Assembly: GCA_002269645.1 (NCBI GenBank)
Contig: NIVC01002294.1
Span: 122,099-186,098, forward strand
From: Macrostomum lignano
Lineage: Eukaryota
Length of the DNA: 64,000 bases
Reading direction: 5' to 3'
The notes beneath the pieces are model-generated. The model was not told the DNA's origin and did no database searches. It worked only from the letters and a program-made list of their open reading frames with translations. Both the position numbers and the translations under genes were made by a program. This document shows, in pieces, positions 33,737-63,532 of the stretch; position 1 is the first letter of the stretch, and every line of letters starts with the position of its first letter.

Positions 33737-33960
33737 TCAGTCCCGCTTGACGGCAGAGCCCGAGCGCCGCCTTCGCTGAGAGGCGCCTCCGCCGCTGCCA
33801 CCCCCGCCGCCCCCGCCAGAGGCGGACGCGGAGCTCGGCCGGCCGCTGTAGGGCCGCGTGCTGATGCTGATCTTGGCCGGCGACTGCTTGGACGGCCTGC
33901 GGGATCGGGGAAGTACAGCGGCCAAATTGAAATCCCAGCCCAGCTCCTGCTTAATCCCCA
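33737..33960 (-). CDS. R e27: terminal exon, S/G/R-rich tail with stop
   Basis: gagcag|TG GGG ATT continues phase 1 from e26: VGIKQELGWDF...KRD*. Confidence 0.7.
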
Positions 33961-34327
33961 CTGCTCAGCTCCAACTCACTTCTTCGAGCCCGCGGTGCCC
34001 GCGAACGAATTGGCGGGGTGCAGCGCCACATTCGAGTCGTCGTAGGCTCGCTTCGCGTGCGAGTGGTCTGCGGGAACGGGAAAAGTGTGTACTTTTGCCC
34101 GCGTACTTTTATTTGTGTACTTTTCCCGCTTCCATGCTTGTAATTGTAAATGTGTACTTTTGTTTTTGTACTTTTGTGACTCATTTTACTTGCCTTCTTT
34201 ATGTATGCAATTTAAAATGCTGTATTTGGTTCACGCGCTCAATTTTAATCCTGCACTTTTGCTTGTGTCTGAAGTTTGCCCTGTTGTACTTTAACACTCA
34301 TTCACTAGCCGGGGAGCCCGAACTCAC

Positions 34328-34468
34328 CCACAGCCGGCTGCCCGTTCTCCACACTCAGCTGATCGTCAAGTCGGGTTTTGTCCTTCACAGAGCGCAGCAC
34401 CTGGCTCATCTCCTCCTCGAAGCTGCTGTAGTCCAGGGCGCAGTACCGGCCGCGCCAGGCGATGTAGC
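34328..34468 (-). CDS. R e26
   Basis: Mirror of 28696-28836. Confidence 0.8.
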
Positions 34469-34555
34469 CTGCGGAGCAGGAGGGGCATCGAGAGAGCGTC
34501 AGTTGCCATGGCAACGGCTGAATAAAAATTGAATTCGTATTAATTAATAATTTAC

Positions 34556-34630
34556 CTTCGGAGTGCACAGCCACAAAGAATGGCACGCCAACAATGTGGA
34601 AGGCCTCGGCGGTGGACATCGGCTCATCGT
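34556..34630 (-). CDS. R e25
   Basis: Mirror of 28535-28609. Confidence 0.8.
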
Positions 34631-34634
34631 CTGC

Positions 34635-35265
34635 GGGCGCCAAGGGTGAAGGCATTGCAGTCTGGTAGCTTTGGGCGCCAAGGGTGAAGGACATTGCAGT
34701 CTGGTAGCTTTGGGCGCCAAGGGTGAAGGACATTGCAGTCTGGTAGCTTTGGGCGCCAAGGGTCAAGGACATTGCAGTCTGGTAGCTTCGGGCGCCAAGG
34801 GTGCAGGACACTGCAGTCTGATGGTAGCTTTGGGCGCCAAGGGTGAAGGACATTGCAGTCTGGTAGCTTTGGGCGCCAAGGGTGAAGGACATTGCAGTCT
34901 GGTAGCTTTGGGCGCCAAGGGTGAAGGACATTGCAGTCTGGTAGCTTTGGGCGCCAGGGGTGAAGGACACTGCAGTCTGGTAGCTTTGGGCGCCAAGGGT
35001 CAAGGACATTGCAGTCTGGTAGCTTTGGGCGCCAGGGTGAAGGACACTGCAGTCTGGTAGCTTTGGGCGCCAAGGGTGAAGGACATTGCAGTCTGGTAGC
35101 TTTGGGCGCCAAGGGTGAAGGACATTGCAGTCTGGTAGCACTGGGCGCCAAGGGTGAAGGACATTGCAGTCTGGTAGCACTGGGCGCCAAGGGTGAAGGA
35201 CATTGCAGTCTGGTAGCTTTGGGCGCCAAGGGTGAAGGACATTGCAGTCTGGTAGCTCTGGACCC
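34635..35265. repeat. 39-bp VNTR (mirror)
   Basis: Reverse complement of 27905-28530. Confidence 0.95.
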
Positions 35266-35699
35266 GCACTATAGGAAAGAGACTCGCACAGCACTTTTGA
35301 GCTTGTGTCAAACTTTTACAGTAGAGCCTGTGAAATCGATCAGATCGCAGCCCTATTCAAAGACTCCTGGCTGAGCGCGTTTGCACAACAAATATTCACG
35401 CCATAAATGCGGGGTGGTGAAAGGTGAGATGCTTCATCTGAGTTCAATAAGCAGCTGAAGGAGCAGTCAGCCACAAGAGCCGACTGCTGAGTAGAGCTAA
35501 AGTACACCGAGCACAACACCGATGTGTGACGACTTTTCAAAGCCCGAACTCACCAGCTCGAGAGCGGCCTTTTTTCGGCACTGGAAAATTGGGTGCCACA
35601 TTTTGCAAACTTGGGTCAGCATGGGGTTGCAGTGGCACTTTTTGGCTCAGGCACCTGAATGACTCACTTTGACCTGCTGACTCCTTGGATTGCCCTGCC

Positions 35700-36180
35700 C
35701 GATGACTCACTTGACCCACCGCTCTGCCCGATGACGCACTTGACCCACCATCCTGCCCGATGGCTCACTTGACCCACCGCTCTGCCCGATGGCTCACTTG
35801 ACCCACCCCCTACCCGATGATTCACTCTGCCCGGTAACTCACTTGACTCACCCACTGCCCAATGACTCACTTGACCCACCCACTGCCCGATGACTCACTT
35901 GACCCACCCACTGCCCGATGATTCACTCTGCCCGATGACTCACTTTACCCACCGCTCTGCCCAATGACTCACTTGACCCACCGCTCTGCCCGATGACTCA
36001 CTTGACCCACCGCTCTGCCCAATGACTCACTTGACCCACTTCTCTGCCCAATGACTCACTTGACCCACTATCCTGCCCGATGACTCACTTGACCCACTTC
36101 CCTGCCCGATGACTCCCTTGACCCACCGCTCTGTCCGATGACTCACTTAAGCCCCCCTGCCCGATGACTCACTTGACCCT
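35700..36180. repeat. 29-bp VNTR (mirror)
   Basis: Reverse complement of 26995-27510. Confidence 0.9.
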
Positions 36181-36582
36181 TTGACCCGGTCAACAGCATA
36201 GACGTGGGTGAGTCCGTCAGTCTCCAGCGCCAGCTCCTTGATGCAGTGCTGCAGGGCGCTCCGCTCGTGCGCATTGTCGAACCGCTGCGTTGCTATGGCA
36301 ACGAAGTCGAATTGCCTACGCAGTTCGGCGGCCAGGCGGACGAAGAACTTGACGTAGCGGATGGAGGCCACGCACCAGCGGGTCCAGAAGCACAGCAGCG
36401 TGACGCTCTTCGGGCCGCCTGGCGGGAACAGCCGCTGCCGCTCCCCGCCAGGCAGCTGCTGCACGTGGGCGGCCGGGGCCGGCACGAATTGGTTGAGGAA
36501 GCCCGGGTTGTAGTAGTTCAGGAAGTTGCGGCGCTCCACCGCCAGCGTCTCCTGGTACAGGCAGCAGCCCTTCTTGGGCCAC
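36173..36582 (-). CDS. R e24: thioredoxin-like, FWTRWCVAS
   Basis: Mirror of 26592-27001. Confidence 0.84.
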
Positions 36583-37664
36583 CTGCGACAGCGGGGGGTG
36601 CGGAGCCTTGGATAGACAGTGCTCAGACTCCTGCCGTTTCATCCCATCTCTCTCCATCACTTGTATCTAATCTATCCACCTCTGTCCCTCTCTCTATCTT
36701 TTCATATGTATCTAATCTTCATCTAATCTGTCTCCCTCTATCCCTCTCTTCTCTCACCCTCTCTCCCATCAGCCTCAGCCGCATTCCAGATTCCAGAGTT
36801 GCCCAGCGCATTAGAAGCAGTTCAGCCCAACAAGCAGCGCTGATCAATCTGGTTCAGTTCAGCGCCCTGAAAAGGCTTCACTATTCAAACTGAAAAGCTT
36901 CACAAGAATGACACAGAAATGAATGCCAGGCGCCTCGCACGAATTCCTTCCTTCCGCCAAAGCCGCCTGAATGACGCAGCAAAACGCGCGCTTCCTCTGA
37001 CGGCCTCCGCCAAAAATGGCATCGCGGACGAGGCGACATTCCCCCCCCCCATGACACTGCCGCCTGCCCGTTCCGCCATCTTCCTGTCGTAATTCGCGCT
37101 TCTCTGGGACTCCCGGCTGCCAGTTCCCCAAGCCCCAATTTGCGTATCCCACATCCCATTGTGCTGCAGCCAGCTCAGGCACTCAAAGCAAATTCGGGAT
37201 TTCCTACAGCCTCAGAGGGTGGGACGCTGCGGGGTGCGACGCTAATGCGAGTTGACTGCGGGAGGCCCCCAGGGGCGGCCGCTGCCTGACAGGAATTCCG
37301 TGCAGGGGATCGGGGAGACAAGACAGGCAGAGAGCCTCGGAGAGCAGGGGATATCTTCCCCATTCAGAGCCATTGTGCCTATGGGATCATTCACAGCCGG
37401 CTGTGGCGGCGCCAGCTTGCGGCGAAGGAGCTGCTTTTCCTAGAAAGCTGGGCAGCCGCTGATCGCGAAGCGACCCTGCCGCCTTCTTCGCCATTGTTCC
37501 TACAGGGGGATTTGCTAGCTGAGCCCTCCCGTAATCCCTGATTTCCCTGATTGCCCAGGCCGCAGCATTCGGCAAAAATAAACAGAAGTCACCCAAGTTA
37601 ACTTCTCACTTCGTTTCGGTTGAACTTCAGTGCGCAGAGGGGCCTGACTTGGCGAACTCTGGCC

Positions 37665-39450
37665 CGACTCAGCAGCTAGACTCAGCAGCTAGACTCAGCA
37701 ACTAGACTCAGCAGCTAGACTCAGCAACTAGACTCAGCTACTAGACTCAGCAACTAGACTCAGCTACTAGACTCAGCAACTAGACTCAGCGACTAGACTC
37801 AGCAACTAGACTCAGCAGCTAGACTCAGCAACTAGACTCAGCAACTAGACTCAGCAACTCGACTCAGCAACTAGACTTAGCAACTAGACTCAGCAACTAA
37901 ACTCAGCAACTAGACTCAGCAACTAGATTCAGCAACTAGACTCAGCAAGTAGACTCAGCAGCTAGACTCAGCAACTAAACTCAGCAACTAGACTCAGCAA
38001 CTAAACTCAGCAACTAGACTCAGCAACTAGATTCAGCAACTTGACCCAGCAACTAGACTCAGCAACTAGACTCAGCAACTAAACTCAGCAACTAGACTCA
38101 GCAACTAGACTCAGCAGCTAGACTCAGCAACTAGACTCAGCTACTAGACTCAGCAACTAGACTCAGCGACTAGACTTAGCAAATAGACTCAGCAACTAAA
38201 CTCAGTAACTAGACTCAGCAACTAGATTCAGCAGCTAGACTCAGCAACAAGACTCAGCAACTAGACTCAGCAACTAAACTCAGTAACTAGACTCAGCAAC
38301 TAGATTCAGCAGCTAGACTCAGCAACAAGACTCAGCAACTAGACTCAGCAACTAGACTCAGCAACTAGACTCAGCAACTAGACTCAGCAGCTAGACTCAG
38401 CAACTAGACTCAGCAGCTAGACTCAGCAACTAGACTCAGCAACTAGACTCAGCAACTAGACTCAGCTACTAGACTCAGCAACTAGACTCAGCGACTAGAC
38501 TCAGCAACTAGACTCAGCAGCTAGACTCAGCAACTAGACTCAGCAACTAGACTCAGCAACTAGACTCAGCAACTAGACTTAGCAACTAGACTCAGCAACT
38601 AAACTCAGCAACTAGACTCAGCAACTAGATTCAGCAACTAGACTCAGCAAGTAGACTCAGCAGCTAGACTCAGCAACTAGACTCAGCAGCTAGACTCAGC
38701 AACTAAACTCAGCAACTAGACTCAGCAACTAGATTCAGCAACTTGACTCAGCAACTAGACTCAGCAACTAGACTCAGCAACAAGACTCAGCAGCTAGACT
38801 CAGCAACTAGACTCAGCAGCTAGACTCAGCAACTAGACTCAGCTACTAGACTCAGCAACTAGACTCAGCGACTAGACTCAGCAACTAGACTCAGCAGCTA
38901 GACTCAGCAACTAGACTCAGCAACTAGACTCAGCAACTAGACTCAGCAACTAGACTTAGCAACTCGACTCAGCAACTAAACTCAGCAACTAGACTCAGCA
39001 ACTAGATTCAGCAACTAGACTCAGCAAGTAGACTCAGCAGCTAGACTCAGCAACTCGACTCAGCAACTAGACTCAGCAACTAAACTCAGCAACTAGACTC
39101 AGCAACTAGATTCAGCAACTTGACTCAGCAACTAGACTCAGCAACTAGACTCAGCAACTAGACTCAGCAGCTAGACTCAGCAACTAGACTCAGCAGCTAG
39201 ACTCAGCAACTAGACTCAGCTACTAGACTCAGCAACTAGACTCAGCAACTAGACTCAGCAACTAGACTCAGCAACTAGACTCAGCAACTAGACTCAGCGA
39301 CTAGACTCAGCAACTAGACTCAGCAACTAGACTCAGCGACTAGACTCAGCGACTCGACTCAGCGACTCGACTCAGCAATTAGACTCAGTAACTAGACTCA
39401 GCAACTAGACTCAGTAACTAGACTCAGCAACTAGACTCAGCAACTCGACT
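37665..39450. repeat. 13-bp VNTR aactagactcagc (mirror, longer)
   Basis: About 1.8 kb. Confidence 0.96.
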
Positions 39451-39469: not shown

Positions 39470-39810
39470 TTCTCTCCGCAGTGAACCTCGTGAATGCAGT
39501 AGAAGGCCATGGGCTGGAACGGGTCTGTCAGCACCTCGACTACGTTGCTCTCCGGTGACTGTGTGCCCTGGGACTCGCACAGCGCCACCATGCTGACTGC
39601 GTGACTGGGCCGGTCTGTGCTCAGCTTGATCCGCACGCTGGACATGCCCTGATGCAGCGCCGAGCCGTACTGCCGGCCGTCCACCAGAACCCGGTAGCCC
39701 GACAGCGGCACCTCCTGGTTGGACTGCGGGCAGGCCCAGGACACCTGCAGCACGAGCTCTCCAGTGTAGGCCTCCAGCGACTTGAAGCAGTCCTCCAGGG
39801 AGTCCATGAT
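39470..39810 (-). CDS. R e23: FN3
   Basis: Mirror of 23902-24242. Confidence 0.88.
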
Positions 39811-41789: not shown

Positions 41790-42344
41790 CTGATTGTAGG
41801 TCTCCGTGTACTTCGCCAGCAGCTGTGTCTCCTCCAGCGTCTTTGTCGGCAGCATGTGGATGTTGTGGATCCGCCGCACATGGCGGTCCCGCCGATTCAC
41901 CAGCCGGCAGACAGTGGCCTCGAGTTGCCGGCGCTGCTCCAGGCCGACCACCGACACTGTGACCGTCGGCGGGTCCGGGGTCAGAGTCGGCTGCACTGTC
42001 AGGGCCGCGGACAGCACAGCCATCTGGGTGCCGTGCAGCTGCACCTCCAGCTGCAGGTGGTAGGTGCCCGAGCGCAGCCCCGTCACCTCCGCCTCCCGAG
42101 TCTCCGGGTGCAGCGGGCCGACTACGCGGATCACCTGGCCCGTGTCGGCCAGCTTGCAGATAAGGCGGAACTGCTTCAGCTTGACGCCCTCCGTCAGGAA
42201 CGGCGCCGGCCAGGCGACCCGGGCGGCGCCGCTGACGGAGCCGGCGAGGGGCCGCAGCTCGCCGGGCAGGCAGCCGGGCCACGTGACGAGCAGGCTGTCG
42301 CTGGGCTTGCTGTTGAAGCGGGGGTCATTGCTGATGGCCTGCAC
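41790..42344 (-). CDS. R e22: FN3 plus helical insert
   Basis: Mirror of 21488-22042. Confidence 0.88.
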
Positions 42345-42656: not shown

Positions 42657-43835
42657 CTGGAAGCTGTAGTCCTGGCACCAGCGGCCCTTGCAGTAGGTGT
42701 AGCTGGTCTCCCCGGCGCCCAGCGTCTCCTCCACCACCCCGTTGATGAAGACCTTGTAGCCGGCCACGGCAGCGTCTCCGTAGTGCCGCGGCTCCGTCCA
42801 GTGCACGGCGATGTAGGAGAAGTTGCAGGCGCGGAGGCGCAGCAGGGGGGTGTCGATCGGGGCGCAGGTCTGCGCGCGCAGGGCGCGGCTTTTCTCCACG
42901 ACGGCGCGGTTGGAGTCGAGCGCGCTGAGCCGCAGGGAGTAGACGGTGCCGGGCAGCAGGTTCTGCAGCAGGCAGGAGCGCTCCTGGTGCGCCAGCGTCT
43001 CGGTGCGTTCGGCCGGCTGTGCCGGGCTGGACCACTGCAGCGCGAAGCTGTGGATTCCGTCCGGGGGCTGGCAGGCCATCCACTCCACCGTCAGGGTCGA
43101 GTCCGTCCGGGCGCTGACCGTCAGCGGGATCTCCGACAGGTCGCCGGCGAGGGCGTCCCCCTCGGCTTCGGCGTCGGCGAAGTCGGGCGGCGGCGCCTCC
43201 GACACGGCCGGCATGTTGGGGTAGGTGCTGACGAACAGGGGCGCGGACGGCGGCGAGTCGGGAAAGTCGCGGTGGGCGGACAGCGCCACCAGCTGCACCC
43301 GGTAGTGCCTGCTGGCCCGGCAGGGAATCACGGCTCGGCGGTGTGTCGGCTCCAGCGGCTCGCCGGCCGCCTTGCCATTCACCAGCAGCTGGTAGCCGGC
43401 GACGCCAACGCCGCCGAACAGCGCCGGCTCCGACCACTCGACGACGATCTCCCGGTCCGACATCGCGTCCAGGAAAATCTGCGGTGCTGCCGGCGGCCCC
43501 GGCGTGGTGAGCTGCACCTGCTGGACGATCGGCTCGCGGGTCTCCCGGGTCAGCAGCGCCTCCAGGCGGGCCGTGACGACGGCGCCGCGCTCAGAGCACT
43601 CCAGTGCTGCACTGTTGGCGGCGGCGTCCAGCACCCGGCGCTGCGCCCGCGCCGCCTCCCGGTCGGTGCTCCAGGTGACGTTGAACTGCTTCATCTGGCC
43701 TTGGAACTCGTCGTCCAGAGTCCAGCGCAGCCGCACCTCGCCGACGCCTGCGCCACCTGCTTCGTCACCGTCTGGCAGGTGAAACTCGGCGGAGATCTCG
43801 CGGATTGCGGCCAGCTGACCTCCCGGCACCCGCAC
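42657..43835 (-). CDS. R e21: about 4 FN3
   Basis: Mirror of 20097-21275; 7 aa differences. Confidence 0.92.
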
Positions 43836-43844: not shown

Positions 43845-44845
43845 TGGGGCGATTCTCAATGGAGATTCTCTGGGGTGGGGGCGATTCTCAATGGGGGTCT
43901 CTGGGGTGGGGGCGATTCCCAATGGGGGTCTCTGGGGTGGGGGCGATTCTCAATGGAGATTCTCTGGGGTGGGGGCGATTCCCAATGGAGATTCTCTGGG
44001 GTAGAGGCGATTCTCAATGGGGGTCTCTGGAAGCGGGGGCGATTCTCAACGGGGGTCTCTGGAAGCGGGGGCGATTCTCAATGGGTGTCTCTGGAAGCGG
44101 GGCGATTCTCAATGGGGGTCTCTGGAAGCGAGGGCGATTCTCAATGGGTGTCTCTGGAAGCGGGGGCGATTCTCAACGGGGGTCTCTGGAAGCGGGGGCG
44201 ATTCTCAATGGGGGTCACTGGAAGCGGAGGCGATTCTTAATGGGGGTCACTGGAAGCGGGGGCGATTCTCAATGGGGGTCTCTGGAAGCGGGGGCGATTC
44301 TCAATGGGGGTCACTGGAAGCGGGGGCGATTCTCAATGGGGGTCTCTGGAAGCGGGGGCGATTCTCAATGGGTGTCTCTGGAAGCGGGGGCGATTCTCAA
44401 TGGGTGTCTCTGGAAGCGGGGCGATTCTCAATGGGGGTCTCTGGAAGCGAGGGCGATTCTCAAAGGGGGTCACTGGAAGCGGGGGCGATTCTCAATGGGG
44501 GTCACTGGAAGCGGGGGCGATTCTCAATGGGTGTCTCTGGAAGCGGGGCGATTCTCAATGGGGGTCTCTGGAAGCGAGGGCGATTCTCAATGGGGGTCAC
44601 TGGAAGCGGGGCGATTCTTAATGGGGGTCACTGGAAGCGGGGGCGATTCTCAAGGGGGGTCTCTGGAAGCGGGGGCGATTCTCAATGAGGGTCACTGGAA
44701 GCGGGGGCGATTCTCAATGGGGGTCTCTGGAAGCGGGGGCGATTCTCAATGGGGGTCACTGGAAGCGGGGGCGATTCTCAAGGGGGGTCTCTGGAAGCGG
44801 GGGCGATTCTCAATGGGGGTCTCTGGAAGTGGGGGCGATTCTCAG
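43845..44845. repeat. 32-bp VNTR (mirror, about 1 kb)
   Basis: Reverse complement unit of 16530-20090. Confidence 0.95.
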
Positions 44846-44900
44846 TGGGGTTCCTAGACCAATGAGCCCTAGAATTCCTGTCCAAGTCTCGGCCGCTCAC

Positions 44901-45452
44901 CTCCACGGGCTCGCTGAAAGTCTCGTCGGGTTCGTCGGGGTACAGGCAGATCTGCTGCTCCTGCTCGGAGCCGCGGCTCTTCCGCAGCCGCCGGGCCTCC
45001 TTCTTGGCGGCGTCGGTCTGGCTGACGGCCACCAGCACGATGCTGTACAGCTTGCCGGGCCGGCACTTCACCAGCCGGCAGGTCTGGGCGTCGGGCCGCA
45101 GGCTCACGTAGGGCTTGCCGTTGATCTCCAGCCGGTAGCCCTCGATGTGGCAGCGCACGTAGCGCCTCTCGCTGGCCTGCTCGGGCCGCACCACCGCCAG
45201 CGCGTACGGCCGCTCCCAGTGCAGCAGGACGGAGTCCGGCTTCACCGCGGCCACCATGGGGCGGGGCTGGGCCACGTGACACCTGGTGCGCACGAACGCC
45301 GGGTCGCTGGAGACATGCGCCGTGCGCCGATTGCGCAGCTCTTCCTCAGCGGTGGCGCCATCTGCTGACGGGTCCAGCGCCGTCTTGACGCTGACGACGG
45401 CCTCCACTACGATGCGGTACTTCGTGCCCGGGCGAAGTCCTTCTAGGGTCAC
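44901..45452 (-). CDS. R e20: FN3 domains
   Basis: 184 open codons; ag/gt bounded. Confidence 0.9.
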
Positions 45453-45663: not shown

Positions 45664-46107
45664 CTTGGAGTCCTTGGGGTCCAGCGAGACGTAGTCGGCG
45701 GCAGACGGGCCGTCCCAGTCGGACGCCCTGGCGGCGGGCCGGGCGCTGTCGGGCACCTCGGCCCAGCGGACCACCTGGCCGCGCAGGCGGTTGGAGCCGG
45801 TGACGGAGGGCGGCTGCCAGCGCAGCTTCACGGCCTGGTCGGTGAGGCCCGCCAGGCGGATGCGGCCGGGCGCCAGGGTGCCGCTGGTGGTGGCCAGCAG
45901 GTGTGCGGCGGGCATCCAGGCGGAGTCGACGAGGCCGGCGAGTTCAGAGAGGTCGGCAGGCAGCTTGCGGGCCTGGCGGGCGGGGTGGCGCGGCGGCAAC
46001 GACTGTAGCGCCTCCTCGGTGACGGCGCAGACGCGGACGGAGTAGTCGGTGCGCTCGCGGAGGTTCTCGATGAGGGCCCGGGTGGCGTCGGGCATGAGCT
46101 CCAGCAC
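45664..46107 (-). CDS. R e19: FN3 domains
   Basis: Mirror of 15195-15638. Confidence 0.88.
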
Positions 46108-46559: not shown

Positions 46560-46984
46560 CTGGAGCTCCCCAGCAGTGGCGCCGGCGGCGGGCGCGCACT
46601 CCACGCGGATGCCGATGACCTCGGAGCCGCGCTCAACAGGGGGGTCCCAGGCCACCAGGAGGCTGCAGCAGGTGGTGGCGGTGACGCCGAGGTTTCTGGG
46701 CGGCAGCGGCGGCTCGGCGGTGCGGAGGCTCAGCCGCTGCGGCCGGCTGCTGACGATGACGGTGCCGCCTCCGTCCTCCTGGCGCTGCTCGCAGCGGGCC
46801 TCGACAACGACGGTGTAGGCGGTGGCGGGCGCGAGGCCCTTGAGCAGGGCGAAGTCCTCCGGGGTGCTGGCGCTGTTGACTTCGCGGTCTGGCGAGCTGC
46901 CCGGCCACCAGGTGATCTGGTAGTGCGTCGGCTGGATGAAGTGCAGCTTCCCGGATGTACCTGGCGGTAAGGCGGCAGGGCTCT
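46560..46984 (-). CDS. R e18: FN3 domains
   Basis: Mirror of 13638-14062. Confidence 0.87.
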
Positions 46985-48554: not shown

Positions 48555-48855
48555 TGCGAGTCCAGGCCACGGTGGCAGAGTGCCCGGTGACGTCATCGCA
48601 CCAGACCCTGGCCGGGGCGAGCACCAGTCCGGTGTAGTTCACCACGAGGGCCGGCCCGGGAGTGCACCGGTTGAATTGGCCGTGTTCCACGCCTCCCCCA
48701 GCGCGCTCCTCGCCCCGCCCTACCGGGTGCGCCGTTAGAGCCACCAGCTGCAGCGTCAGGCGCTGGCCGAGCGTCAGGTCGCGAAGCCGGAAAGAGGTCG
48801 CGTCCGCTGGCAGCACAGAGCCGTAGGGCTCCCCGTCGCGAAGCATTTGGTAGCC
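48555..48855 (-). CDS. R e17: FN3
   Basis: Mirror of 11804-12104. Confidence 0.87.
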
Positions 48856-49499: not shown

Positions 49500-49676
49500 C
49501 GATATCTGCGCCTCGCCAAACTGCTGCGGCACGGACCAGGAGATCTCCAGGCCCTCCTCTGTCATGGACTCGACTCGCAACGCTGGGCTGATGGGCGGGG
49601 CTGAGCAGCTCACGCTGAGCGGGGCGCTGAGCTCGCTCTCGCAAAGACAGAACACGTGATCGGCGTTGGCGTCAAT
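49500..49676 (-). CDS. R e16
   Basis: Mirror of 10278-10454. Confidence 0.8.
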
Positions 49677-49766
49677 CTTGATGGGGTTGAGCCAAACATA
49701 TTAATATTAGAAGTTCGGCATGCTACTTAGTATGAGTAGTATACTTAAAACAGTGCCAAGACTTGC

Positions 49767-49902
49767 ATTCTTGTGACCGGCGATGGCCTTGGCCTGCACG
49801 TCGTAGACGACGCCAGCCTGCAGGTCGGACAGGTAGTAGGTGTAGGTGCGCCGGCCGGGGGAGGCCTTCAGCTCGCCGTGCCACTTCTCGTCCACGAACA
49901 CC
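49767..49902 (-). CDS. R e15 (probable GC donor)
   Basis: Mirror of 10052-10187. Confidence 0.75.
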
Positions 49903-50051
49903 CTGCGGGGGGCAGTCAGGGAATATTCTTTGAAATTTAAAACAGAGCTTCACAGTTCAGCGCCAAGAATTTCCCCAGATCGGAGGAAATCTTCACTTGA
50001 AGAAATATTTGATGGCCGATTTGAAGGCCGATTTGAGTTAATTTGAAAACG

Positions 50052-51355
<1,304 letters not shown>

Positions 51356-51396
51356 CACATCCAATATCTCCGGTGACCTCTGGCCCGGACACCCAC

Positions 51397-51891
51397 CGGT
51401 ACTTGCTGACGTCCTCCTCCTGAGGACCGGCGGCCGCTTCGCCCTGCCAGGCGACGATGACGGCGCCCTCCGCGCTGGTCGGCTGCTCCGACAGCTGCGG
51501 CGGCTCCGGGCGCCGGGGGCAGCTCACCCGGACGGTGTTGGACGGCTGGCTGGTGCGCTGGGACCGGCCGGCCACCGCCACCACCGCCACGGCCACCGTC
51601 CGGCCCGGCTGCAGCGGCTCCAGCGTCGTCTGCTGCGTCTGCGCCGGCAGCTGCCCGCCCTGCGGCTCGCCGTCAATCAGCAGTCGGTAGCCGACGAGGT
51701 CCTCGCCACCGAAGGCGCGGCCGGGCCTCCAGGCCACCGCCACCTGTTTGACGTCGACGCTCTGAACGACGAGGCGCGGCGGCTCCGGCGGCCCGGCGGT
51801 GGTGAAGTCGCAGACTGCCGACTTTGTGCTCAGCTCCGCCTGGCCGATGCCCGAGCTGTCCAGCTGACGGAAGCTGGCCGTCACGGAGATC
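51397..51891 (-). CDS. R e14: FN3 domains
   Basis: Mirror of 9267-9761. Confidence 0.9.
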
Positions 51892-52179: not shown

Positions 52180-52573
52180 CTGTAGTCGCAGCCGATGGCG
52201 AGGCCGCGGCAGAGGCAGTCCCGCTCGCCGCCGGTGCAGTTCCAGGTGTGCACCACCCCGTCAGCCTCCGAGTCGAAGCTCATGTCCGAGTTCACCTTGG
52301 CTGAGAAGGCCCGTCCGGCCACGCTGACGGTGCTGACCTCGTGCCGGAACTGGTGCTCCAGCGGCCGGGAGAAATCCCAGGTGACGCGAACCCGGTCCGG
52401 GTGCTCCGGGTCGGGCAGCAACTGCACGATCGGCACCGGCAGGGCGCTGGCCGTCTCCTCTGCCGACAGCGCGGCTGCTGCCGCCCCTGCCGTCACCGCC
52501 GCTGCTGCCGCGGCACCGCTGGCGACCAGCCGCTCTTTCGCGGGCTCCGCATCCGCCACCTCCACGACCGAGT
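52180..52573 (-). CDS. R e13
   Basis: Mirror of 8350-8743. Confidence 0.82.
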
Positions 52574-54062: not shown

Positions 54063-54270
54063 CAGATTCGCCGCTATCTGAATGCTTCACTTTTTGCTGC
54101 TTCTGCTGCTGCTTCTGCTGCTGCTGCTGCTGCTGCTCGCTTACCAGGACCGCAGCGGCTGCCGCAGGCGGAGGCGACGGTGACAGAGCGGCTCTCTTCT
54201 GCTGCTCTCGAGCGCTCATCTTTGATTCCTTCAATGGCGCAGCCGGAGGGGTCACCGAGCGGGCTGCTGA

Positions 54271-54304
<34 letters not shown>

Positions 54305-54473
54305 GAGACGCGGGCGTGCCGCGGTTGCTGCCGCCTGTTGAACTCCGCATCCTCCATCAGCGGCAGTTCTTCAGCTTGCTGCTCTTTTTGTTGCTCATCG
54401 ACGCTCTCAGAGCTGAAGGACACCTCGGACGGCTGTTTCTCAAGCTCGATCTGCTGCGGCTGCTGCTGGTTCT
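54063..54473 (-). CDS. R e11: low complexity
   Basis: Mirror of 6281-6691. Confidence 0.7.
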
Positions 54474-55209: not shown

Positions 55210-55554
55210 CCGCAGTCTCTTTGGTCTCGGTCTCGTCCCCGTTGGCAACCGGCTTCTCCTCGACTATGGAGCTCCTGCGGCTGCTGCTGGAGCTGCTGGA
55301 GCTCCCGGAGCCGCTGGAGCCACCGCCAGCCTCCCTAGCCGCCTTCTCCTTCTCCGCTGCCCGCCTGTCCGCCGTCTGGATGGCCTCCAGCTGCTCCGCC
55401 GGCATCCGGTGGTAGCCGACGCCGTCCGTCACGAAGACGAACTCGGAGAGCTCTTCCGACTGCAGCAGGCGGGAGCCTTCAGGAGGCACCACAGAGTCAA
55501 CGTCCAGCGGCAGGCGAAACTCCAACTTGTTGGAGGGCAGCTCCGACATCTCGC
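55210..55554 (-). CDS. R e10
   Basis: Mirror of 5200-5544. Confidence 0.82.
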
Positions 55555-55926: not shown

Positions 55927-56197
55927 CAGTAGACTCTACCCGAACGGCGGACACGATGATGGAATAATCGGAGTTCAGCGTGCAGCCCTCGATCACCACC
56001 TTGCAGCGCTTGCTGCCGGCCTCGGGGGTGACCAGCTTGCCGCACTGCCGCCCGTTCAGCGTCACCTTGTAGCCCCGCAGCGAGTAGTCGGTGGCTGCCA
56101 GGGCGCCCCACACCAGCGTGATGGTGCTGGGCTTGCTGCTGAGCTCCAGCGACACCAGCGGCCCGCTAACGGAGGTCGCCTGGGGACAATCGAATGT
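55927..56197 (-). CDS. R e9: FN3 (intact frame)
   Basis: 271 bp; phase 0-1. Confidence 0.87.
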
Positions 56198-56234
56198 CTG
56201 GGGAAGAGATGGAGATCAATGTGATTAACGTAAG

Positions 56235-56755
56235 TACAACCCAATGCAGCCCAGTGCAACCCTGTGCAACCCAATGCAACCCAATGCAACCCAATGCAAC
56301 ACAATGCAACCCAATGCAACCCAATGCAACCCAATAAAACTCAATGCAACCCAATGCAACCCAGTGCAACATAATTCAACTCAATGCAACCCAATGCAAC
56401 CCAATGCAACACAATGCAACCCAGTGCAACCCAATGCAACTCAATGCAACCCAATGCAACCCAATGCAACACAATGCAACCCAATGCAACCCAATGCAAC
56501 CCAATGCAACCCAATGCAACCCAATGCAACACAATGCAACCCAGTGCAACCCAATGCAACTCAATGCAACCCAATGCAACCCAATGCAACACAATGCAAC
56601 CCAATGCAACTCAATGCAACCCAATGCAACCCAATGCAACACAATGCAACCCAATGCAACCCAATGCAACCCAATGCAACCCAATGCAACTCAATGCAAC
56701 CCAGTGCAACCCAGTGCAACCCAATGCAACCCAATGCAACCCAATGCAACCCATA
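56235..56755. repeat. 10-bp VNTR tgcaacccaa (mirror, longer)
   Basis: Direct reading. Confidence 0.95.
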
Positions 56756-56765
56756 GGAAACCCAC

Positions 56766-57047
56766 CAGCTTGTTGGACTTGTGCGGCTGGTAGGCGGCGC
56801 CGTCCCTGGGCAGGGCCTCCAGCCAGATGCTGTACACTCGGCCGGCCGCCAGCCCCGACGCCTGCAGGCAGCTGTTGCTGGGCAGCCGCACGCCGCCGTA
56901 GGAGACGCCGTTGACCAGCAGGCGGTACCCCGCCAGCATCTCCGTCAGGCCCTCAGCCAGCGGCTGCCAGAAAATTTCCACCGTGCCGTCCACGACGTGC
57001 AGCAGCTTCACGGCCGGCACGCAGTTGAACCACTTCCAGGACTCGCT
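56766..57047 (-). CDS. R e8: FN3
   Basis: Mirror of 3678-3959. Confidence 0.88.
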
Positions 57048-57118: not shown

Positions 57119-57223
57119 CATGGGCCCGGCTCCACCCGGCCCACCGCCTCCGCCACCGGCTCCTCCTCGGCCTCGGATTCCTCGGCGTCCTCGCCAGCGC
57201 CGGAGTCCACGACCCAGAACCGG
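57119..57223 (-). CDS. R e7: acidic linker (1-bp deletion vs L)
   Basis: 105 bp vs 106 bp; ggcccatg vs ggccccatg. Confidence 0.75.
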
Positions 57224-57886: not shown

Positions 57887-57993
57887 CGGGAGGAGAAAAT
57901 CTCAGATGGCTGGCGGTTTGGCGCCACCGCCATGGCGCGGATGAAGACGATGCCCGGCCTGCGCAGCTTCAGCGGCTCCCAGGTCTGGTACAC
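57887..57993 (-). CDS. R e6
   Basis: Mirror of 2767-2873. Confidence 0.85.
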
Positions 57994-58437
57994 CTGCGGG
58001 GAGGGCGCGGGGCGAAGGGGCTTGATGAGGCGGTCAGCTTCACCAAATAGACGACAGCGACATCGCAAACAGTTCAAAAGCCACAAAAATGAGGAAAATT
58101 TCGATTCAAAGCCCATGGTGACGAGGAAGCAAATCAAAGACTTGAAACGGTTGTAAGAGGGCATTTCATTCTCTAAGAAACAAAGTTTGGAGTCCACAGG
58201 CTGGTGGCATCTCTGATTCACTATTTTTGTTGTGATCAAAACGGTAAACAAATAAAGCACTGGATAGGAATTAAAGTGATGAAGCACTCTGGATGCTGTG
58301 CCCCAGTGACAGGAGCGCTCACGGTGGCCGAAGGTTCCTCATCGTCAGCGATTGGCCGCTCGCCTTTGAGCGTCTGCAACGGGCGGGGAGTCTCACTGAG
58401 GCATTCTGGGCCTGGCTGCTCGCATTTGCGCTTGAAA

Positions 58438-59300: not shown

Positions 59301-59427
59301 TTGCAGCCCCTTTCGCACCCGATTCAACCCCAAATCAGCCCCAACTCAGCCCCAACTCAGCCCAACTCAGCCCCAACTCAGCCCTAACTCAGCCCCAACT
59401 CAGCCCCAACTCAGCTCCAACTCGCAC

Positions 59428-59739
59428 TTTTACTCCGGGCCGGTGCAGCAGCGGCGGGCTGCCGTCCATGGTGTAGAGGATGACGGCCTTGGGGTCGCGG
59501 CACTCGAGCCGGACCACGGTTCCCATGGCAACGGTGCCGCCCTCGTGAAAGGAGACGATCTTGGGTGCAGGAGTTCGATCGGGCTCCGGCAGCACCAGCA
59601 CGGAGCCGCAGCGGCCGGGCGCGCCCACCGAAGCCACGCAGAACATGCCGGGCCGGGTGAAGGTGTACAGGAAGCTGCCGCGACGACTCGCCCGCCCGCT
59701 GTTGAACGACTGGTCGCCGTTCGCCGTGCTGAGCGGTGC
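59428..59739 (-). CDS. R e5 (intact frame)
   Basis: 104 codons; FLYTFTRPGMF and ILYTMDGSPP. Confidence 0.88.
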
Positions 59740-60454
59740 CTGCAGTGGGGTTGGCAACTTCTGTGTTGGAGCTGTGGCTGCTTCGGTGGGTTGGTAAGCG
59801 AGCTGTTGTGTAGGTGGTGGTGAGGTTGTTGTGTAGGTTGTTGTGTAGGTTGTGGTGTAGGTTGTGTGTAGGTTGTTTTGTAGGCTGTTATGTAGGCTGT
59901 AGTATAGGTTGTTGTGCAGGTTGTGGTGTAGATTGTTTTTTAGGCTGTTGTGCCGGTTGTTGTGTAGGCTGTTGTGTAGGTTGTGGTGTAGGTTGTGTGT
60001 AGGTTGTTGTGTAGGCTGTTGTGCAGGTTGTGGTGTAGATTGTTTTTAGGCTGTTGTGCAGGTTGTTGTGTAGGTTATTTTTTAGCTTGCGTGTAGGTTT
60101 CTGTGTAGGCTGTTTTGTCGGTTGTTTGTTTCGTACATAAATATTTTGGTTTTTTTGCAGACTCTACGTGTAGTGTAAAGATTTTTGGTCATTTTACGGG
60201 GTTTGTGTAGAATTTCAGGTTACTGTAGGCCATTTTTAGTGTTGTGAAGGCGTTGATTGGCTGATTGTATTTGTTGTTGTTGTTGTTACTGTTGTTGTTA
60301 TTGTAGCAATTTGATTGTCGAGTGCGTAGGTAGCCAGTTGCACAGGTTTTTAGGTAGCTTGTTGAATAGTTTATCGGGTAGTTTGTTGAGTGGCAGTAGT
60401 TTGTTAGTAGCTTCTTGTGTAGTTTTATAGTTAAGTTAAGCAGAGGCGGCTCAC

Positions 60455-60754
60455 AGCGCTGTTCGGCGGGTTCACATTGACGATGTTGTGCTCCTCGAAC
60501 TCGGGCGCGTCTCCCCAGTCCCACAGCACGCTGTCGCCCTTGACGATGGTGACGGCGGACGGGAAGAAGCCGGAGCTGGCGTTGAGCCGCACGACGGCGT
60601 GGTCCTGCGCGTCGCTGACAATCACTGAGCTGATGCGGCTCTCGTCCATTGGGGCCTCCTTGTTGGCGCCGAGCTGCAGGAAGGCCCGGCTGGTGAAATT
60701 GAAGACGCCAGCCTCTGTGAAGGCGCGCTCCATGCAGCGTCGCGGGGTCAGGCC
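60455..60754 (-). CDS. R e4
   Basis: Mirror of 91-390. Confidence 0.88.
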
Positions 60755-60834
60755 CTGGGTAGGTCACGGGTTCGAATCTTATTCACACTTTGGTTTGCAG
60801 ATATTGGCTTCAAATTAATTTTTAACAAAAAAAT

Positions 60835-61195
60835 CACAACCTGATTCCTCGAATTCACAACTTTATTCCTAGAATTCACAACTTGATTCCTAGAATTCAC
60901 AATCTGATTCCTAGAACTCACAACCTGATTCCTAGAACTCACAACCTAAATTGTAGAATTCACAGCCTCTGATTCCTAGAATTCACAGCCTCTGATCCCT
61001 AGAATTCACAACCTGATTCCTAGAATTCACAACCTGATTCCTAGAATTCACAACCTGATTCCTGGAATTCACAGTCTGATTCCTGGAATTCACAGTCTGA
61101 TTCCTAGAATTCACAGTCTGATTCTTAGAATTCACAGTCTGATTCTTAGAATCCACAGTCAGATTCCTGGAATTGACATCCTGATTCCTGGAATT
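60835..61195. repeat. 21-bp VNTR cctgattcctagaattcacaa
   Basis: In the e3-e4 intron. Confidence 0.9.
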
Positions 61196-61238
61196 CAAAG
61201 CTTTATTCTTGGAAAGTTTCCTAGAAAGCTTGGCTCAC

Positions 61239-61679
61239 CTGAGACCGGTGCTGCGCATCCATGAGGTCGCCCATGGCGGCAATGTTCACCACATCGTGCG
61301 TGCGAAGTCCGCGGAACACCCAGGCCACCAGGTCGTTGACCGTAGCGACCACCGGGTCGGGGCTGAGGCCGGTGGCGCCCACCTGCACCTGGTGCACCCG
61401 GCAGGCGGAGCGGCACTGCACGGACCCGACAACGCCCTGTAGGCCCTCGCTGATGTAGTGGTACAGGCCGGGCCTCTCAAACCGGTGCATGAAGGCGCAG
61501 GGCGGGTCCGTCAGGGCGCCGCTCTGAAAGCCGTCGTCCAGTGGCCGGCCCTCCGGGGACACCTGAAGGACATTGTGCAGCCTGTCGGGCCGCTGCCACA
61601 CCCACCAGACCAGGTCGCCACTGCACACCGAGAGCTTCTTTGGTTCGAAGCCCGTCTCCGTGATGGTGATGGTGTGGTT
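61239..61679 (-). CDS. R e3: cupredoxin-like repeats 3-4
   Basis: cag|NHTITITETGFEPKKLSVCSGDLVWW...HNV...FERPGLYHY...HRSQ|gtgag; 147 codons; phase 0-0. Confidence 0.88.
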
Positions 61680-61744
61680 CTGGTGAGGGACGGCAAAAAA
61701 CGGTCATTGATTTCTTCAAAATGAATTTATTACAAAGCCCTGAG

Positions 61745-62440
61745 ATATCCACCCCTAATCACCAGGATCCGCCCCTAATTACCAGAATCCGCCCCCCAAA
61801 CAATCAGAATCCGCTCCCGAAGCCGCTCCTCCGCTCCCCAAACCAATCAGAATCCGCTCCCCAAACCAATCAGAATCCGATCTCAAACCAATTAGAATCT
61901 GCCCCCCAAACAATCAGAATCCGCTCCCCAAACCAATCAGAATCCGATCCCAAACCAATTAGAATCTGCCCCCAAACAATCAGAATCCGCTCCAAAACAT
62001 CAGAATCCGCCCCAAATTACCAGAATCCGCCCCTAATCACCAGGATCGCCCCTAATCACCAGAATCCGCCCCTACTCACCAGGATCCGCCCCTAATCATC
62101 AGAATCCGCCCCAAACCATCAGAATCCGCCCCCGAAACCATCAGAATCCGCCCCCAAACCATCAGAATCCGCCCCCCCCCAACCATCAGAATCCGCCCCC
62201 AAAACAATCAGAATCCGCCCCCAAAACAATCAGAATCCACCCCCTAAAACAATCAGAATCCGCCCCTAAACCATCAGAATCCGCCCCCAAACCTTTAGAA
62301 TCCGCCCCGAAAACCATCAGAATCCGCCCCCAAAACCATCAGAATCCGCCCCGAAAACCATCAGAATCCGCCCCAAAACCACCAGAATCCGCCCGAAAAC
62401 CATCAGAATCCGCCCCCAAAACCATCAGAATCCGCCCCCG
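61745..62440. repeat. About 21-bp VNTR ccccaaaaccatcagaatccg
   Basis: Fills the e2-e3 intron. Confidence 0.9.
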
Positions 62441-62445
62441 CTCAC

Positions 62446-62892
62446 CCTCGGCCCGGGCGCAGCGATGAGTGTCGATGACGCCAGGCTGTTTGGTGCGTTG
62501 TTCAGCTTGAAGTGCTGGATGGCCGCGTGGCTCGGTGTCACCATCAGGGCGCCCATGCTGGCGAAGGCCTCCTGCGCCGAGTCGTCCAGCTGCTGGCACT
62601 GGCCGTCTTCGCAACCCTCCCGGAGCTGAGCGACTCCCGCCGGCCAGGGTGAGTCCAGCCTCCGCGATGCCGAAGGCAGGCGGCATCTCCTTGGGGTCCC
62701 AGGTCCACCACACCCGCTCGTTGACGACCAGCTGCAGCAGGTCTGGCGTGAAGCCATCTGCCGACAGCTGCACCCGGTGCTCCTGCGGCTTCACCTTCAC
62801 GATGACGGTGCCGACGTAGGCGGCCGCTCCTGGTGGTTGAAGTCCGAGTAGTGGAACACCCCGGCTCCAGGAAGTCGTGCGCCATTAACCCG
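62446..62892 (-). CDS. R e2: cupredoxin-like repeats 1-2 (3 apparent 1-bp indels)
   Basis: Reconstructed AHDFLEPGVFHYSDFNHQEAAAYVGTVIVKVKPQEHRVQLSADGFTP...; donor gtgag. Confidence 0.65.
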
Positions 62893-63014
62893 CTGCGGCT
62901 GGGCTGCGGCCAGCGAAGCCCTGCTTCTTGAGCTGCGGAGGGAGTCGGAGGGGTCAAACGGGATGGTGGGGTCAGAGAAGACAGTGGGCCAGTGATTGAA
63001 ACGTTAGGGTAATA

Positions 63015-63355
63015 GGGGGTCAGTGAGCAGATGGCAGGGTCTGAGGGGTCAGTGAGCAGATGGCAGGGTCAGGGGGTCAGTGAGCAGATGGCAGGTCAGG
63101 GGTCAGTGAGCAGATGGCAGGGTCAAGGGTCAGTGAGCAGATGGCAGGGTCAGGGGGGTCAGTGAGCAGATGGCAGGGTCAGGGGGGTCAGTGAGCAGAT
63201 GGCAGGGTCAAGGGGGGTCAGTGAGCAGATGGCAGGGTCAGGGGGTCAGTGAGCAGATGGCAGGGTCAGGGGGTCAGTGAGCAGATGCAGGGTCAGGGGT
63301 CAATGAGCAGATGGCAGGGTCAGGGGTCAGTGAGCAGACGGAGGGTCAGGGGGTC
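63015..63355. repeat. About 26-bp VNTR gggtcagtgagcagatggcagggtca
   Basis: In the e1-e2 intron. Confidence 0.9.
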
Positions 63356-63366
63356 AGTACGCCAAC

Positions 63367-63532
63367 CTTGAAAGACTCTCCCGGCGGGACCCCCTGGCGG
63401 GCATGGTGACCTCGTAGGGGTTGTGCTTTCTCTGGCAGGTGGTTTTGCTCCACTGGAACCAGACCGGTCGCCCGCGTTCACCACCAGGATGGCCGGCTCG
63501 AAGCTGCGGTCGGTGATCTCCACCGGTGCTCG
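63367..63532 (-). CDS. R e1 (first visible): cupredoxin-like repeat 1, approximate ends, indel present
   Basis: VEITDRSFEPAILVVNAGDR then VWFQW...KHN after a 1-bp shift. Confidence 0.6.

Follow-up and report, generated by a model that had tools for sequence, protein, structure and literature searches.

A predicted giant protein of Macrostomum lignano with copper-less cupredoxin repeats, a fibronectin type III array and a thioredoxin-like end is a member of an unnamed family

We analyzed a window of 64,000 nucleotides from the flatworm Macrostomum lignano (NCBI GenBank assembly GCA_002269645.1, contig NIVC01002294.1, positions 122,099 to 186,098 of the forward strand; all coordinates below count from the first letter of this window). 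Its minus strand carries, at 63532..33737, 27 exons that, judged from the sequence, form one protein-coding gene. The predicted product is a member of an unnamed protein family with a distinctive order of domains, in which cupredoxin-fold repeats, a CHB_HEX_C domain and a long array of fibronectin type III (FN3) domains are followed by a thioredoxin fold of the TlpA/ResA type; the features of the family that fall within the window were all found, while the MGxxxS start lies outside it. A first-pass annotation had already placed 27 exons at 33737-63532, and our model reproduces both ends exactly, with the same number of exons.

The gene model was computed by dynamic programming with codon-usage log-odds, GT/AG splice sites, frameshift moves and tandem-repeat masking, and was then corrected by hand against related proteins. 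The first exon in the window begins at 63532 behind a CAG acceptor, and the stop codon is located at 33739..33737 (-). All 26 introns have GT..AG borders, the majority of them near the CAG/../GTGAGT consensus, and the reading phases are continuous over all of them. The exons sum to 9,091 nt, or 3,032 aa after the repair of nine one-base deletions, as compared to about 3,070 aa in the first-pass annotation, and the repaired coding sequence contains no in-frame stops. Of the single frame that had been claimed for these exons, the consistent phases across introns stood, but the assembled frame is broken nine times by the one-base deletions. The weakest junctions are those between exons 14 and 15, where the splice sites are poor, those of exon 26, for which no orthologue support was obtained, and the 3' end of exon 11, which is located in low-complexity sequence. 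The gene extends past the window edge (64000) by about 287 aa upstream according to a UniProt model, P0002, and these residues comprise an MGSAPSQ start, a Gly-/Ala-rich stretch and two further cupredoxin-like repeats. The full protein is thus predicted to contain about 3,320 residues, of which the exons in the window encode the C-terminal 3,032.

In a tblastn search, the exons follow residues ~275-3259 of a 3,427-aa protein from Elysia in unbroken order on a single strand, and they are equally collinear with a 3,697-aa protein from Ptychodera. The window also contains a second, inverted copy of the gene (copy A, 1..29048, plus strand), which lies tail to tail with the gene described here (copy B) at 94-99% DNA identity. 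Divergence between the two copies is about 0.8% in the exons and about 5-6% in the introns, so that the exons are about seven-fold less divergent. In 14 gap-free exon pairs, we counted 33 synonymous and 16 non-synonymous differences, which corresponds to a ratio of non-synonymous to synonymous differences per site (pN/pS) of 0.17, and the differences were distributed 11/4/34 over the three codon positions, with 34 of the 49 at the third base. The low pN/pS and the third-position bias therefore indicate that the inferred frames are under purifying selection.

Two UniProt models from M. lignano, P0001 (A0A1I..., 2,222 aa) and P0002 (A0A1I8IHZ5, 1,269 aa), match the gene at about 99-100%, or ~95-100% when compared exon by exon; P0001 was the only close match in the word-indexed collection, and P0002 was found by exhaustive search. 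In P0001, about 1,200 residues of unrelated, internally duplicated sequence are fused in front, and both models break off within the low-complexity region at ~54,300. Their automatic names are "Protein kinase domain-containing protein" (the chimera) and "PKD domain-containing protein". Both models also omit part of cupredoxin repeat 6, which is coding according to the orthologues. That the public models end in the low-complexity region, and that the predicted junction of exons 11 and 12 sits in sequence of the same kind, would agree with two or three adjacent genes, for the cupredoxin, FN3 and thioredoxin parts, that merely look continuous. We consider this very improbable: the phases are continuous across 26 introns, no start or stop context was seen at the supposed breaks, and the same order of parts is found in single models from at least six distant species, including RefSeq models with multiple isoforms. 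Separate genes were rejected on the collinearity of the orthologues, and the earlier claim of a single gene is borne out by collinear, full-length orthologues in several phyla.

The N-terminal part of the protein is an array of cupredoxin-like repeats. Exon 1 (63367..63532; this and all following exons on the minus strand) encodes the first half of repeat 3 of seven (EHRVEITDRSFEP..GDRVWFQW..KHNPYEV..ESFK) and contains three one-base deletions; it was set from the identical peptide in P0001 and P0002, a frameshift-aware alignment and manual reading, with CTCCAG as acceptor and GTTGGC as donor. Exon 2 (62446..62932) encodes the second half of repeat 3 and the whole of repeat 4, which is degenerate and lacks the HN motif. 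Besides the match to the repeat hidden Markov model (HMM), exon 2 shows 159 identical codons, five frameshifts and one internal substitution in comparison with P0002, the frameshifts being one-base deletions near 62917, 62864, 62829, 62638 and 62621. Repeat 5 and the first half of repeat 6 are encoded by exon 3 (61239..61679), identified by its open frame and by structure prediction and comparison (below), and exon 4 (60455..60754), which is 100% identical to residues 1617-1716 of P0001, completes repeat 6 and covers the first half of repeat 7 (GDSVLWDW..EEHNIVNV). In the full-length orthologues from bilaterians, an HMM built from family sequences recognized seven repeats, which are conserved in position, and it detected fewer in the sponge (three) and the choanoflagellate. 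In M. lignano, the five repeats in the window, the number given in the first-pass annotation, together with the two upstream in P0002, line up in position with those of Ptychodera, Diadema, Anneissia, Elysia and Intoshia.

An AlphaFold2 model of exon 3, based on the exact window translation and a 12-row alignment, had a predicted local distance difference test score (pLDDT) of 84. A Foldseek search with this model retrieved plastocyanins, pseudoazurins, the cupredoxin domain of EfeO and the cupredoxin 5fc9, with E-values down to 4e-7 and target-normalized template modeling scores (TM-scores) of 0.65-0.81, and nearly all of the top 50 matches were plastocyanin, pseudoazurin, EfeO, CuA or NirK domains. 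By sequence alone, the family profile matched 5fc9 (7e-7), amicyanins (~1e-5) and plastocyanins. The Pfam model Cupredoxin_1 scored 15 bits in the window protein, which is below the cut-off, and passed the cut-off in the Ptychodera orthologue; Pfam scans of the raw open reading frames (ORFs) missed both the cupredoxin and the thioredoxin parts. At the level of the predicted structure, these results confirm that the exon 3 region has the Greek-key beta-sandwich fold of cupredoxins, in agreement with the plastocyanin-type fold named in the first-pass annotation.

The repeats do not appear to bind copper in the manner of blue copper proteins. The only copper ligand left is the His in the HN motif, which several repeats retain. 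The Cys, His and Met expected in the C-terminal loop are missing from all seven, and alignments that included 1bxu and 5fc9 show Ser, Ile, Thr, Gly, Leu or Val in their place. A Cys in repeat 7 of M. lignano is not conserved in the orthologues. A functional copper site in the repeats was rejected on these ligand positions, and the window gene is therefore, as read from its sequence, not a blue copper protein. The Greek-key fold and the HN motif are shared with type-1 blue copper proteins (plastocyanin, amicyanin, pseudoazurin and 5fc9 from Nitrosopumilus). These are small periplasmic or lumenal electron carriers, whereas the domains described here lack the Cys, His and Met of the copper loop and form a tandem array in a giant, predicted cytoplasmic animal protein.

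In exon 5 (59428..59739), with a border set from P0001 and P0002, repeat 7 ends and the CHB_HEX_C_1/Fn3_assoc domain begins (YTMDGSPP); the remainder of this domain is encoded by exon 6 (57887..57993). In agreement with the annotated CHB_HEX_C domain, CHB_HEX_C_1 (PF13290) scored 26.8-28.9 bits in the window protein, above the Pfam cut-off of 22, and Fn3_assoc (PF13287) scored 22.5 bits, just below the cut-off of 23; both are above the cut-off in the Ptychodera and Elysia orthologues. An acidic linker (RFWVVDSGAGEDAEESE..) follows in exon 7 (57119..57223), which has one C fewer than copy A.

In the family, the CHB_HEX_C domain is followed by two FN3 domains, a long acidic low-complexity stretch and a further FN3 array of about 13 domains, into which a helical segment is inserted near the end. 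FN3 domains 1 (WKWFNCVP..) and 2 are encoded by exon 8 (56766..57047) and exon 9 (55927..56197), the latter with a Pfam fn3 match. The acidic, Ser-rich low-complexity region, which is probably disordered, starts in exon 10 (55210..55554) and continues with runs of Ser, Gln and Ala in exon 11 (54063..54473). The putative donor of exon 11, CTG/GTAAGA, is the best match in the phase that joins exon 12, and the indels by which copies A and B differ in this ORF keep the reading frame. Exon 12 (52180..52573) encodes an Ala-rich linker and domain 3, exon 13 (51397..51891) domain 4 and the start of domain 5, and exon 14 (49752..49902), with the weak donor GTTTTAAG, the remainder of domain 5. Domain 6 starts in exon 15 (49500..49676), which has a weak acceptor (ATCAAG) and contains a segment demanded by the orthologue alignment (CLCESE..PPISPALRVESM), and is completed in exon 16 (48555..48855), the best-conserved stretch, with 62% identity to Elysia. 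Domain 7 and the start of domain 8 are located in exon 17 (46560..46960), domain 8 and the start of domain 9 in exon 18 (45664..46107), and domains 9 and 10 in exon 19 (44901..45452), where copy A has a one-base deletion. Exon 20 (42657..43835), the largest, starts with a beta-rich, divergent segment, possibly a 16th FN3 domain, and continues with domains 11-13 (64 bits with Pfam fn3). Domain 14 and the conserved helical segment (EQRRQLE..LVNRRDR) are encoded by exon 21 (41790..42344), and exon 22 (39470..39810) encodes domain 15, which resembles Ig_RIMBP2, and the start of a Cys/His-rich linker (FYCIHEVHC).

With an iterated family HMM, we identified 15 FN3 domains in the window protein in addition to the divergent stretch at the start of exon 20, as compared to about 16 in the first-pass annotation, 15-16 in most long orthologues, 13 in Intoshia and 8 in the sponge. 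The Pfam model fn3 (PF00041, cut-off 25) scored 173 bits over six stretches in the middle third of the protein and 80.8 bits over two stretches in the C-terminal third. Conservation peaks in particular FN3 exons (up to 62% identity to the mollusc) and not at the thioredoxin end (27-31%), and because of these peaks we suggest that the predicted rod carries specific binding surfaces and is not a mere spacer.

Long tandem arrays of beta-sandwich domains inside the cell are shared with titin, twitchin, obscurin and the RIM-binding proteins, and intracellular FN3-type arrays of this length are otherwise typical of muscle proteins. The Pfam model Ig_RIMBP2 also matched, with 34 bits for the window protein and 61 bits for the orthologues. 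These likenesses would fit a titin-, twitchin- or obscurin-like ruler of the sarcomere or the cortical cytoskeleton, or an active-zone scaffold similar to the RIM-binding proteins, in either case with an incidental lipid anchor. We regard such a role as improbable. The Pfam scans of the window protein and the orthologues revealed no kinase, SH3, Ig I-set or other hallmark domains, and the phyletic pattern is different: the family is present in choanoflagellates and sponges, which have neither muscle nor synapses, and was not seen in vertebrates, insects and nematodes, which have both.

At the C-terminal end, exon 23 (36173..36582) encodes the second part of the linker (GCCLYQ) and the N-terminal two thirds of a thioredoxin-like domain, including the sequence FWTRWCVAS (CxxS). 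Exon 24 (34556..34630, 75 nt) encodes the cis-Pro loop of the fold (AEAFHIVGVPFFVAVHSE; VGVPFF), in which the GVP is present, and exon 25 (34328..34468) its last strand and helix (YIAWRGRYCALDYSSFEEE). For the structure model of this fold, we used the domain of the Ptychodera orthologue and included the window exons in the alignment. In this model, the pLDDT was 67.6 overall and 80-93 in the core, and an insert of 37 residues was disordered. Foldseek matched the model to SdbA, StoA, CcmG, DsbE of M. tuberculosis, TlpA, ResA and the pneumococcal Etrx proteins, with E-values from 6e-6 and target-normalized TM-scores up to 0.79, and the family profile matched StoA of B. subtilis (8.5e-7), followed by YkuV, thioredoxins and ResA. 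The model and profile matches indicate that the earlier assignment of this domain to a TlpA/ResA-type thioredoxin fold with a cis-Pro loop is right.

The active-site motif is WCVAS in copy B and WC[LK][AS][SA] in other animals; Intoshia has no Cys at this site, and the choanoflagellate protein has WCTPC. Because the animal proteins have CxxS and the choanoflagellate protein CxxC, the dithiol site probably became a single-cysteine site early in animals. The thioredoxin fold with its N-terminal extension, central insert, W-C position and cis-Pro loop is shared with TlpA, ResA, StoA and CcmG (DsbE-type), but the second Cys is replaced in the window protein, which would make a normal dithiol cycle impossible. 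Since the CxxC motif is not retained, the window gene, on the evidence of this motif, does not encode a TlpA/ResA oxidoreductase. The TlpA-type enzymes are membrane-anchored and periplasmic, whereas the domain is here the C-terminal module of a predicted cytoplasmic giant.

A conserved Cys/His cluster is located ahead of the thioredoxin-like domain (F-[YC]-C-x-H-x2-H ... G-C-C-x-Y; 39480..39470 and 36582..36540 on the minus strand in the window). The window version is FYCIHEVHC..GCCLYQ, and the cluster, which was modeled with low confidence, looks like a small metal-binding or disulfide motif. Behind the thioredoxin-like domain, exon 26 (33980..34067) encodes a tail segment; it has good splice sites, lacks orthologue support and is the least certain exon. 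Exon 27 (33737..33896) encodes a basic, Ser-/Gly-rich tail that includes the stop codon and the family motif ISISTRPYS, found as IS[IV]N[RK]RPYS in the family members P0006 and P0157 and as RRPYSA in P0004.

An exhaustive HMMER search with the cupredoxin array yielded 336 matches at E <=1e-3, of which 14 were at <=1e-30. We looked up 30 of the 150 listed matches, including all 14 at E <=1e-30, and no vertebrate, insect or nematode was seen among those with a named organism. A word-indexed search with a single cupredoxin exon or with the alignment of the thioredoxin region gave no match, although orthologues are present in that collection, and only a near-full-length query recovered P0001. Full-length, collinear orthologues of 2,851-4,042 aa were identified in a hemichordate (Ptychodera flava, XP_070557721, 3,697 aa, with six RefSeq isoforms), two echinoderms (Anneissia japonica, XP_033114658, 3,241 aa; Diadema setosum, XP_072180602, 4,042 aa), a sea slug (Elysia chlorotica, RUS88738, 3,427 aa), an orthonectid (Intoshia linei, OAF69324, 3,004 aa) and a glass sponge (Oopsacas minuta, KAI6653272, 2,851 aa). 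The choanoflagellate Didymoeca costata has a protein of 1,646 aa (EP00039_P008018, P0057), and partial models or fragments were found in Bulinus truncatus (2,961 aa), Patella, Argonauta, Mytilus, Adineta, Sycon, Priapulus and Hydra. Of the six full-length orthologues and the Didymoeca protein, all except that of Intoshia have the MGxxxS start. They are 34-40% identical to the window protein over the cupredoxin array and up to 62% identical in single FN3 exons.

These proteins are annotated as uncharacterized, hypothetical or "FN3 domain-containing", and full-text literature searches by architecture and by accession revealed no paper on them, which agrees with the statement in the first-pass annotation that no gene of this architecture could be named. 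By sequence, they constitute an unnamed family that extends from choanoflagellates and sponges to molluscs, echinoderms and hemichordates. From N- to C-terminus, the family architecture is an MGxxxS start, seven cupredoxin-fold repeats without copper ligands, one CHB_HEX_C/Fn3_assoc domain, the FN3 array, the Cys/His-rich linker, the TlpA/ResA-type thioredoxin fold and a basic tail with the RPYS motif. The window protein shares with its orthologues the end-to-end order of domains, the helical LxNxRD segment, the Cys/His linker and the thioredoxin-like end with the GVPT loop, and differs from them by the lack of a 50-70-residue insert in the thioredoxin domain and by a shorter disordered region. 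The Didymoeca protein has an intact CxxC motif and seven-fold fewer FN3 domains, so that the FN3 array is almost absent. Because of this paucity of FN3 domains in the choanoflagellate, the long FN3 rod was apparently added in animals. The Didymoeca protein also has a WW domain at its N-terminus (Pfam, 28 bits), and an IQ-like motif (LLLQSFYRRYLRRKKK) was seen by eye after its CHB_HEX_C domain. In M. lignano, a second, diverged paralogue (P0012/P0165/P0166, e.g., PAA46087.1) starts with MGSAPSQ and is ~34% identical over the matched stretches, of which there are two, the best covering query residues 1-152.

The frame of copy B is broken three times in exon 1, five times in exon 2 and once in exon 7 (~57124). 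Each of these breaks consists in the loss of a single base within or next to a short run of G or C, and none is an insertion or a stop. Despite the eight deletions in exons 1 and 2, their 220 codons show one amino acid difference from P0002 and none from P0001. Copy A contains at least four frame-breaking one-base changes, with single-base sites at ~1113, 1225, 4527, 16165 and 26792/26798, of which the last is a compensating pair that turns FWTRWC into FWTAAC, so that copy A reads AACVAS. The exon indels that separate the two copies are likewise all single-base changes within or next to short runs of G or C, and the sites of the breaks differ between the copies. One-base deletions in G or C runs with near-zero amino acid change are the pattern of long-read consensus errors, not of a decaying gene, and on this sequence pattern the nine breaks in copy B are best explained as assembly consensus errors.

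Copy A has the exon structure of exons 4-25 of the minus-strand gene, and the window edge truncates it at the start. At the other end, the homology runs exactly up to an assembly gap of 311 N (29049..29359); its last two exons were not found beyond this gap, where an unrelated tandem repeat is located. Three publications (PMC12869490, PMC5704211, PMC10733133) describe M. lignano as a recent hidden polyploid that has undergone whole-genome duplication, so that copy A may represent a genuine paralogue in tail-to-tail arrangement, a homeologue in the neopolyploid genome or a haplotig joined by mistake. In such a genome redundant copies exist, and as the frame is broken nine times in copy B and at least four times in copy A, the window gene might be thought a decaying pseudogene that arose by recent duplication. 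This pseudogene reading was rejected on the indel pattern, and we give it hardly any credence: the breaks are solely single missing bases in or next to short G or C runs, with no insertion or stop and at most one amino acid change in 220 codons, the break sites differ between the copies, and pN/pS is 0.17.

Tandem repeats make up 60% of the intron sequence and less than 1% of the exon sequence, and the six-frame list of ORFs is therefore full of long, spurious repeat ORFs, which reach 711 aa (LSVC repeats). The intron repeats are minisatellites and microsatellites (e.g., 49950..51390, 43850..44850, 37660..39450 and 56230..56760), and the lengths of the arrays vary strongly between the two copies, with one intron measuring 3,616 nt in one and 1,065 nt in the other. 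The spacer between the copies (29360..33700) is also mostly tandem repeats, and no convincing gene was seen in it; a repeat at 30750..31813 with a unit of ~32-35 nt is read as acidic ORFs (GEDDGDNEGDWGE) on one strand and as ORFs of SPSLSPSSSPQ on the opposite strand. Downstream of the stop codon, neither an AATAAA nor an ATTAAA signal was found within ~840 nt, and an Rfam scan of the window gave no match.

The proposed cellular location is based on the N-termini. Eleven gene models from seven phyla or lineages begin with MG[STA][GA][APC]S, and P0002, which runs into exon 1, starts with MGSAPSQ. The N-myristoylation consensus is G-{EDRKHPFYW}-x-x-[STAGCN]-{P} (PROSITE PS00008), and the MG[STA][GA][APC]S starts fit it. 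A scan for hydrophobic stretches identified no convincing signal peptide or transmembrane helix in any full-length member; the few matches are barely above the threshold, and the only one in the window protein is a poly-alanine run. Both observations support the suggestion in the first-pass annotation of a cytoplasmic protein without a transmembrane helix.

Bacterial FN3, cupredoxin, CHB_HEX_C and TlpA-type proteins, like most animal FN3 proteins, are secreted or located at the cell surface, and the window protein might likewise be thought to be a secreted or surface adhesion protein. TlpA, ResA and StoA are extracytoplasmic enzymes. Moreover, the best matches to the cupredoxin array outside Holozoa are proteins from metagenomes or metagenome-assembled genomes (MAGs), at least one of them bacterial, in which tandem copper-binding plastocyanin domains are combined with PKD or FN3 domains. 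Tandem plastocyanin-type and FN3/PKD beta-sandwiches are indeed shared with these proteins (e.g., MEA2155111.1 from a Solirubrobacteraceae MAG; P0062, P0025), at least one of which carries the name "large repetitive protein". However, the latter score 102-290 bits with Copper-bind (PF00127), as compared to the 15 bits of the window protein with Cupredoxin_1, lack the order of CHB_HEX_C, FN3 and thioredoxin domains and are presumably located at the cell surface. Secretion seems highly unlikely to us, given that the full-length orthologues have no signal peptide or transmembrane helix, that the conserved Met-Gly start fits N-myristoylation, a cytosolic modification, and that the proteins contain many unpaired cysteines.

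We favor, with a probability of roughly 0.55, the reading that the window contains a real gene of the family, that its product is a membrane-tethered cytoplasmic rod and that the frame breaks are assembly errors. Several points weigh against it. The M. lignano models in UniProt are truncated or chimeric, and the one-gene interpretation rests on orthologues and splice logic. The thioredoxin model is of an orthologue and of moderate overall confidence (pLDDT 67.6), and all Pfam thioredoxin models scored below the cut-off in the scans, with Thioredoxin_8 as the commonest weak match. Myristoylation is predicted from the consensus alone, for a start codon outside the window. Finally, the frame breaks are unevenly spread, with eight in the first 653 coding nucleotides and one in the remaining ~8,400 nt, which suggests a locally poor consensus.

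Under this favored reading, the protein would be made in the cytoplasm and myristoylated on Gly2, and its N-terminus would be tethered to the inner face of the membrane. A beta-sandwich domain measures about 4 nm, and the ~24 such domains of the protein would form an extended rod or spacer on the order of 100 nm. The conserved helical segment (..RRQLE..LVNRRDR..) may pair two chains. The single-cysteine thioredoxin module would act as a cysteine-dependent, perhaps redox-sensitive, docking site or sensor and not as a full oxidoreductase, and the cupredoxin repeats would be structural or binding modules and not electron carriers.

A tentative refinement is that the protein is a cargo of the myristoyl-binding chaperone UNC119 at the ciliary or flagellar membrane, or at the collar or microvilli, of ciliated cells, where it would serve as a tether or ruler from the membrane to the axoneme. 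The N-termini of family members (MGTGAS, MGSGAS, MGAGAS and MGSGSS) have small residues after Gly2, as do those of known UNC119 cargoes, which are MGAGASAEEK in transducin-alpha, MGSGSSR in cystin and MGTASS in NPHP3. UNC119 cargoes reportedly follow a rule of small residues at +2 and +3, attributed to Jaiswal and colleagues in 2016. The same N-terminal consensus also occurs on many non-ciliary proteins. All lineages with the family have motile cilia or flagella, and the family was not seen in nematodes and insects; neither was it seen in vertebrates, which keep nearly all cilium genes, and this argues against a core role in cilia. UNC119 brings myristoylated G-alpha and NPHP3 to cilia (reviewed in PMC6678300).

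The cupredoxin array, the CHB_HEX_C domain and the TlpA-type thioredoxin represent three of the four domain types and are otherwise typical of bacterial cell-envelope proteins. A bolder scenario, which we put forward as an unlikely one, is that of an undescribed family older than the animals, in which a lipid-anchored "ruler" with domains of bacterial origin serves as a redox-sensitive tether at the membrane of ciliated or collar cells. The copper-less cupredoxin array, the CHB_HEX_C domain and the TlpA-type thioredoxin may, in this scenario, have passed from bacteria into the holozoan stem, the FN3 rod would have been added in animals while CxxC changed to CxxS, and the family would later have been lost in vertebrates, insects and nematodes.

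The domain types and giant intracellular FN3 proteins are known, and the sequences themselves were already public, which limits the surprise; the combination of domains, its age and its lipid-anchor signature are undescribed. The absence of any study and the reuse of two redox folds raise the interest of the family. For the study of M. lignano, the public models of the gene are truncated or chimeric and carry misleading names, and this stretch of the assembly has homopolymer errors and possibly an artefactual inverted duplicate. RNA interference works in this species. Transgenesis works as well (PMC5730564), and both localization and loss-of-function work are therefore feasible. More broadly, the family is large, strongly conserved and under purifying selection, with members in choanoflagellates, sponges, cnidarians, spiralians, a priapulid and ambulacrarians. 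No name has been given to it, no paper on it was found, and no member was seen in the usual model organisms, which is probably why it has been overlooked. In its members, the cupredoxin and TlpA-type folds appear to have been reused without redox chemistry, as modules of a predicted cytoplasmic animal protein.

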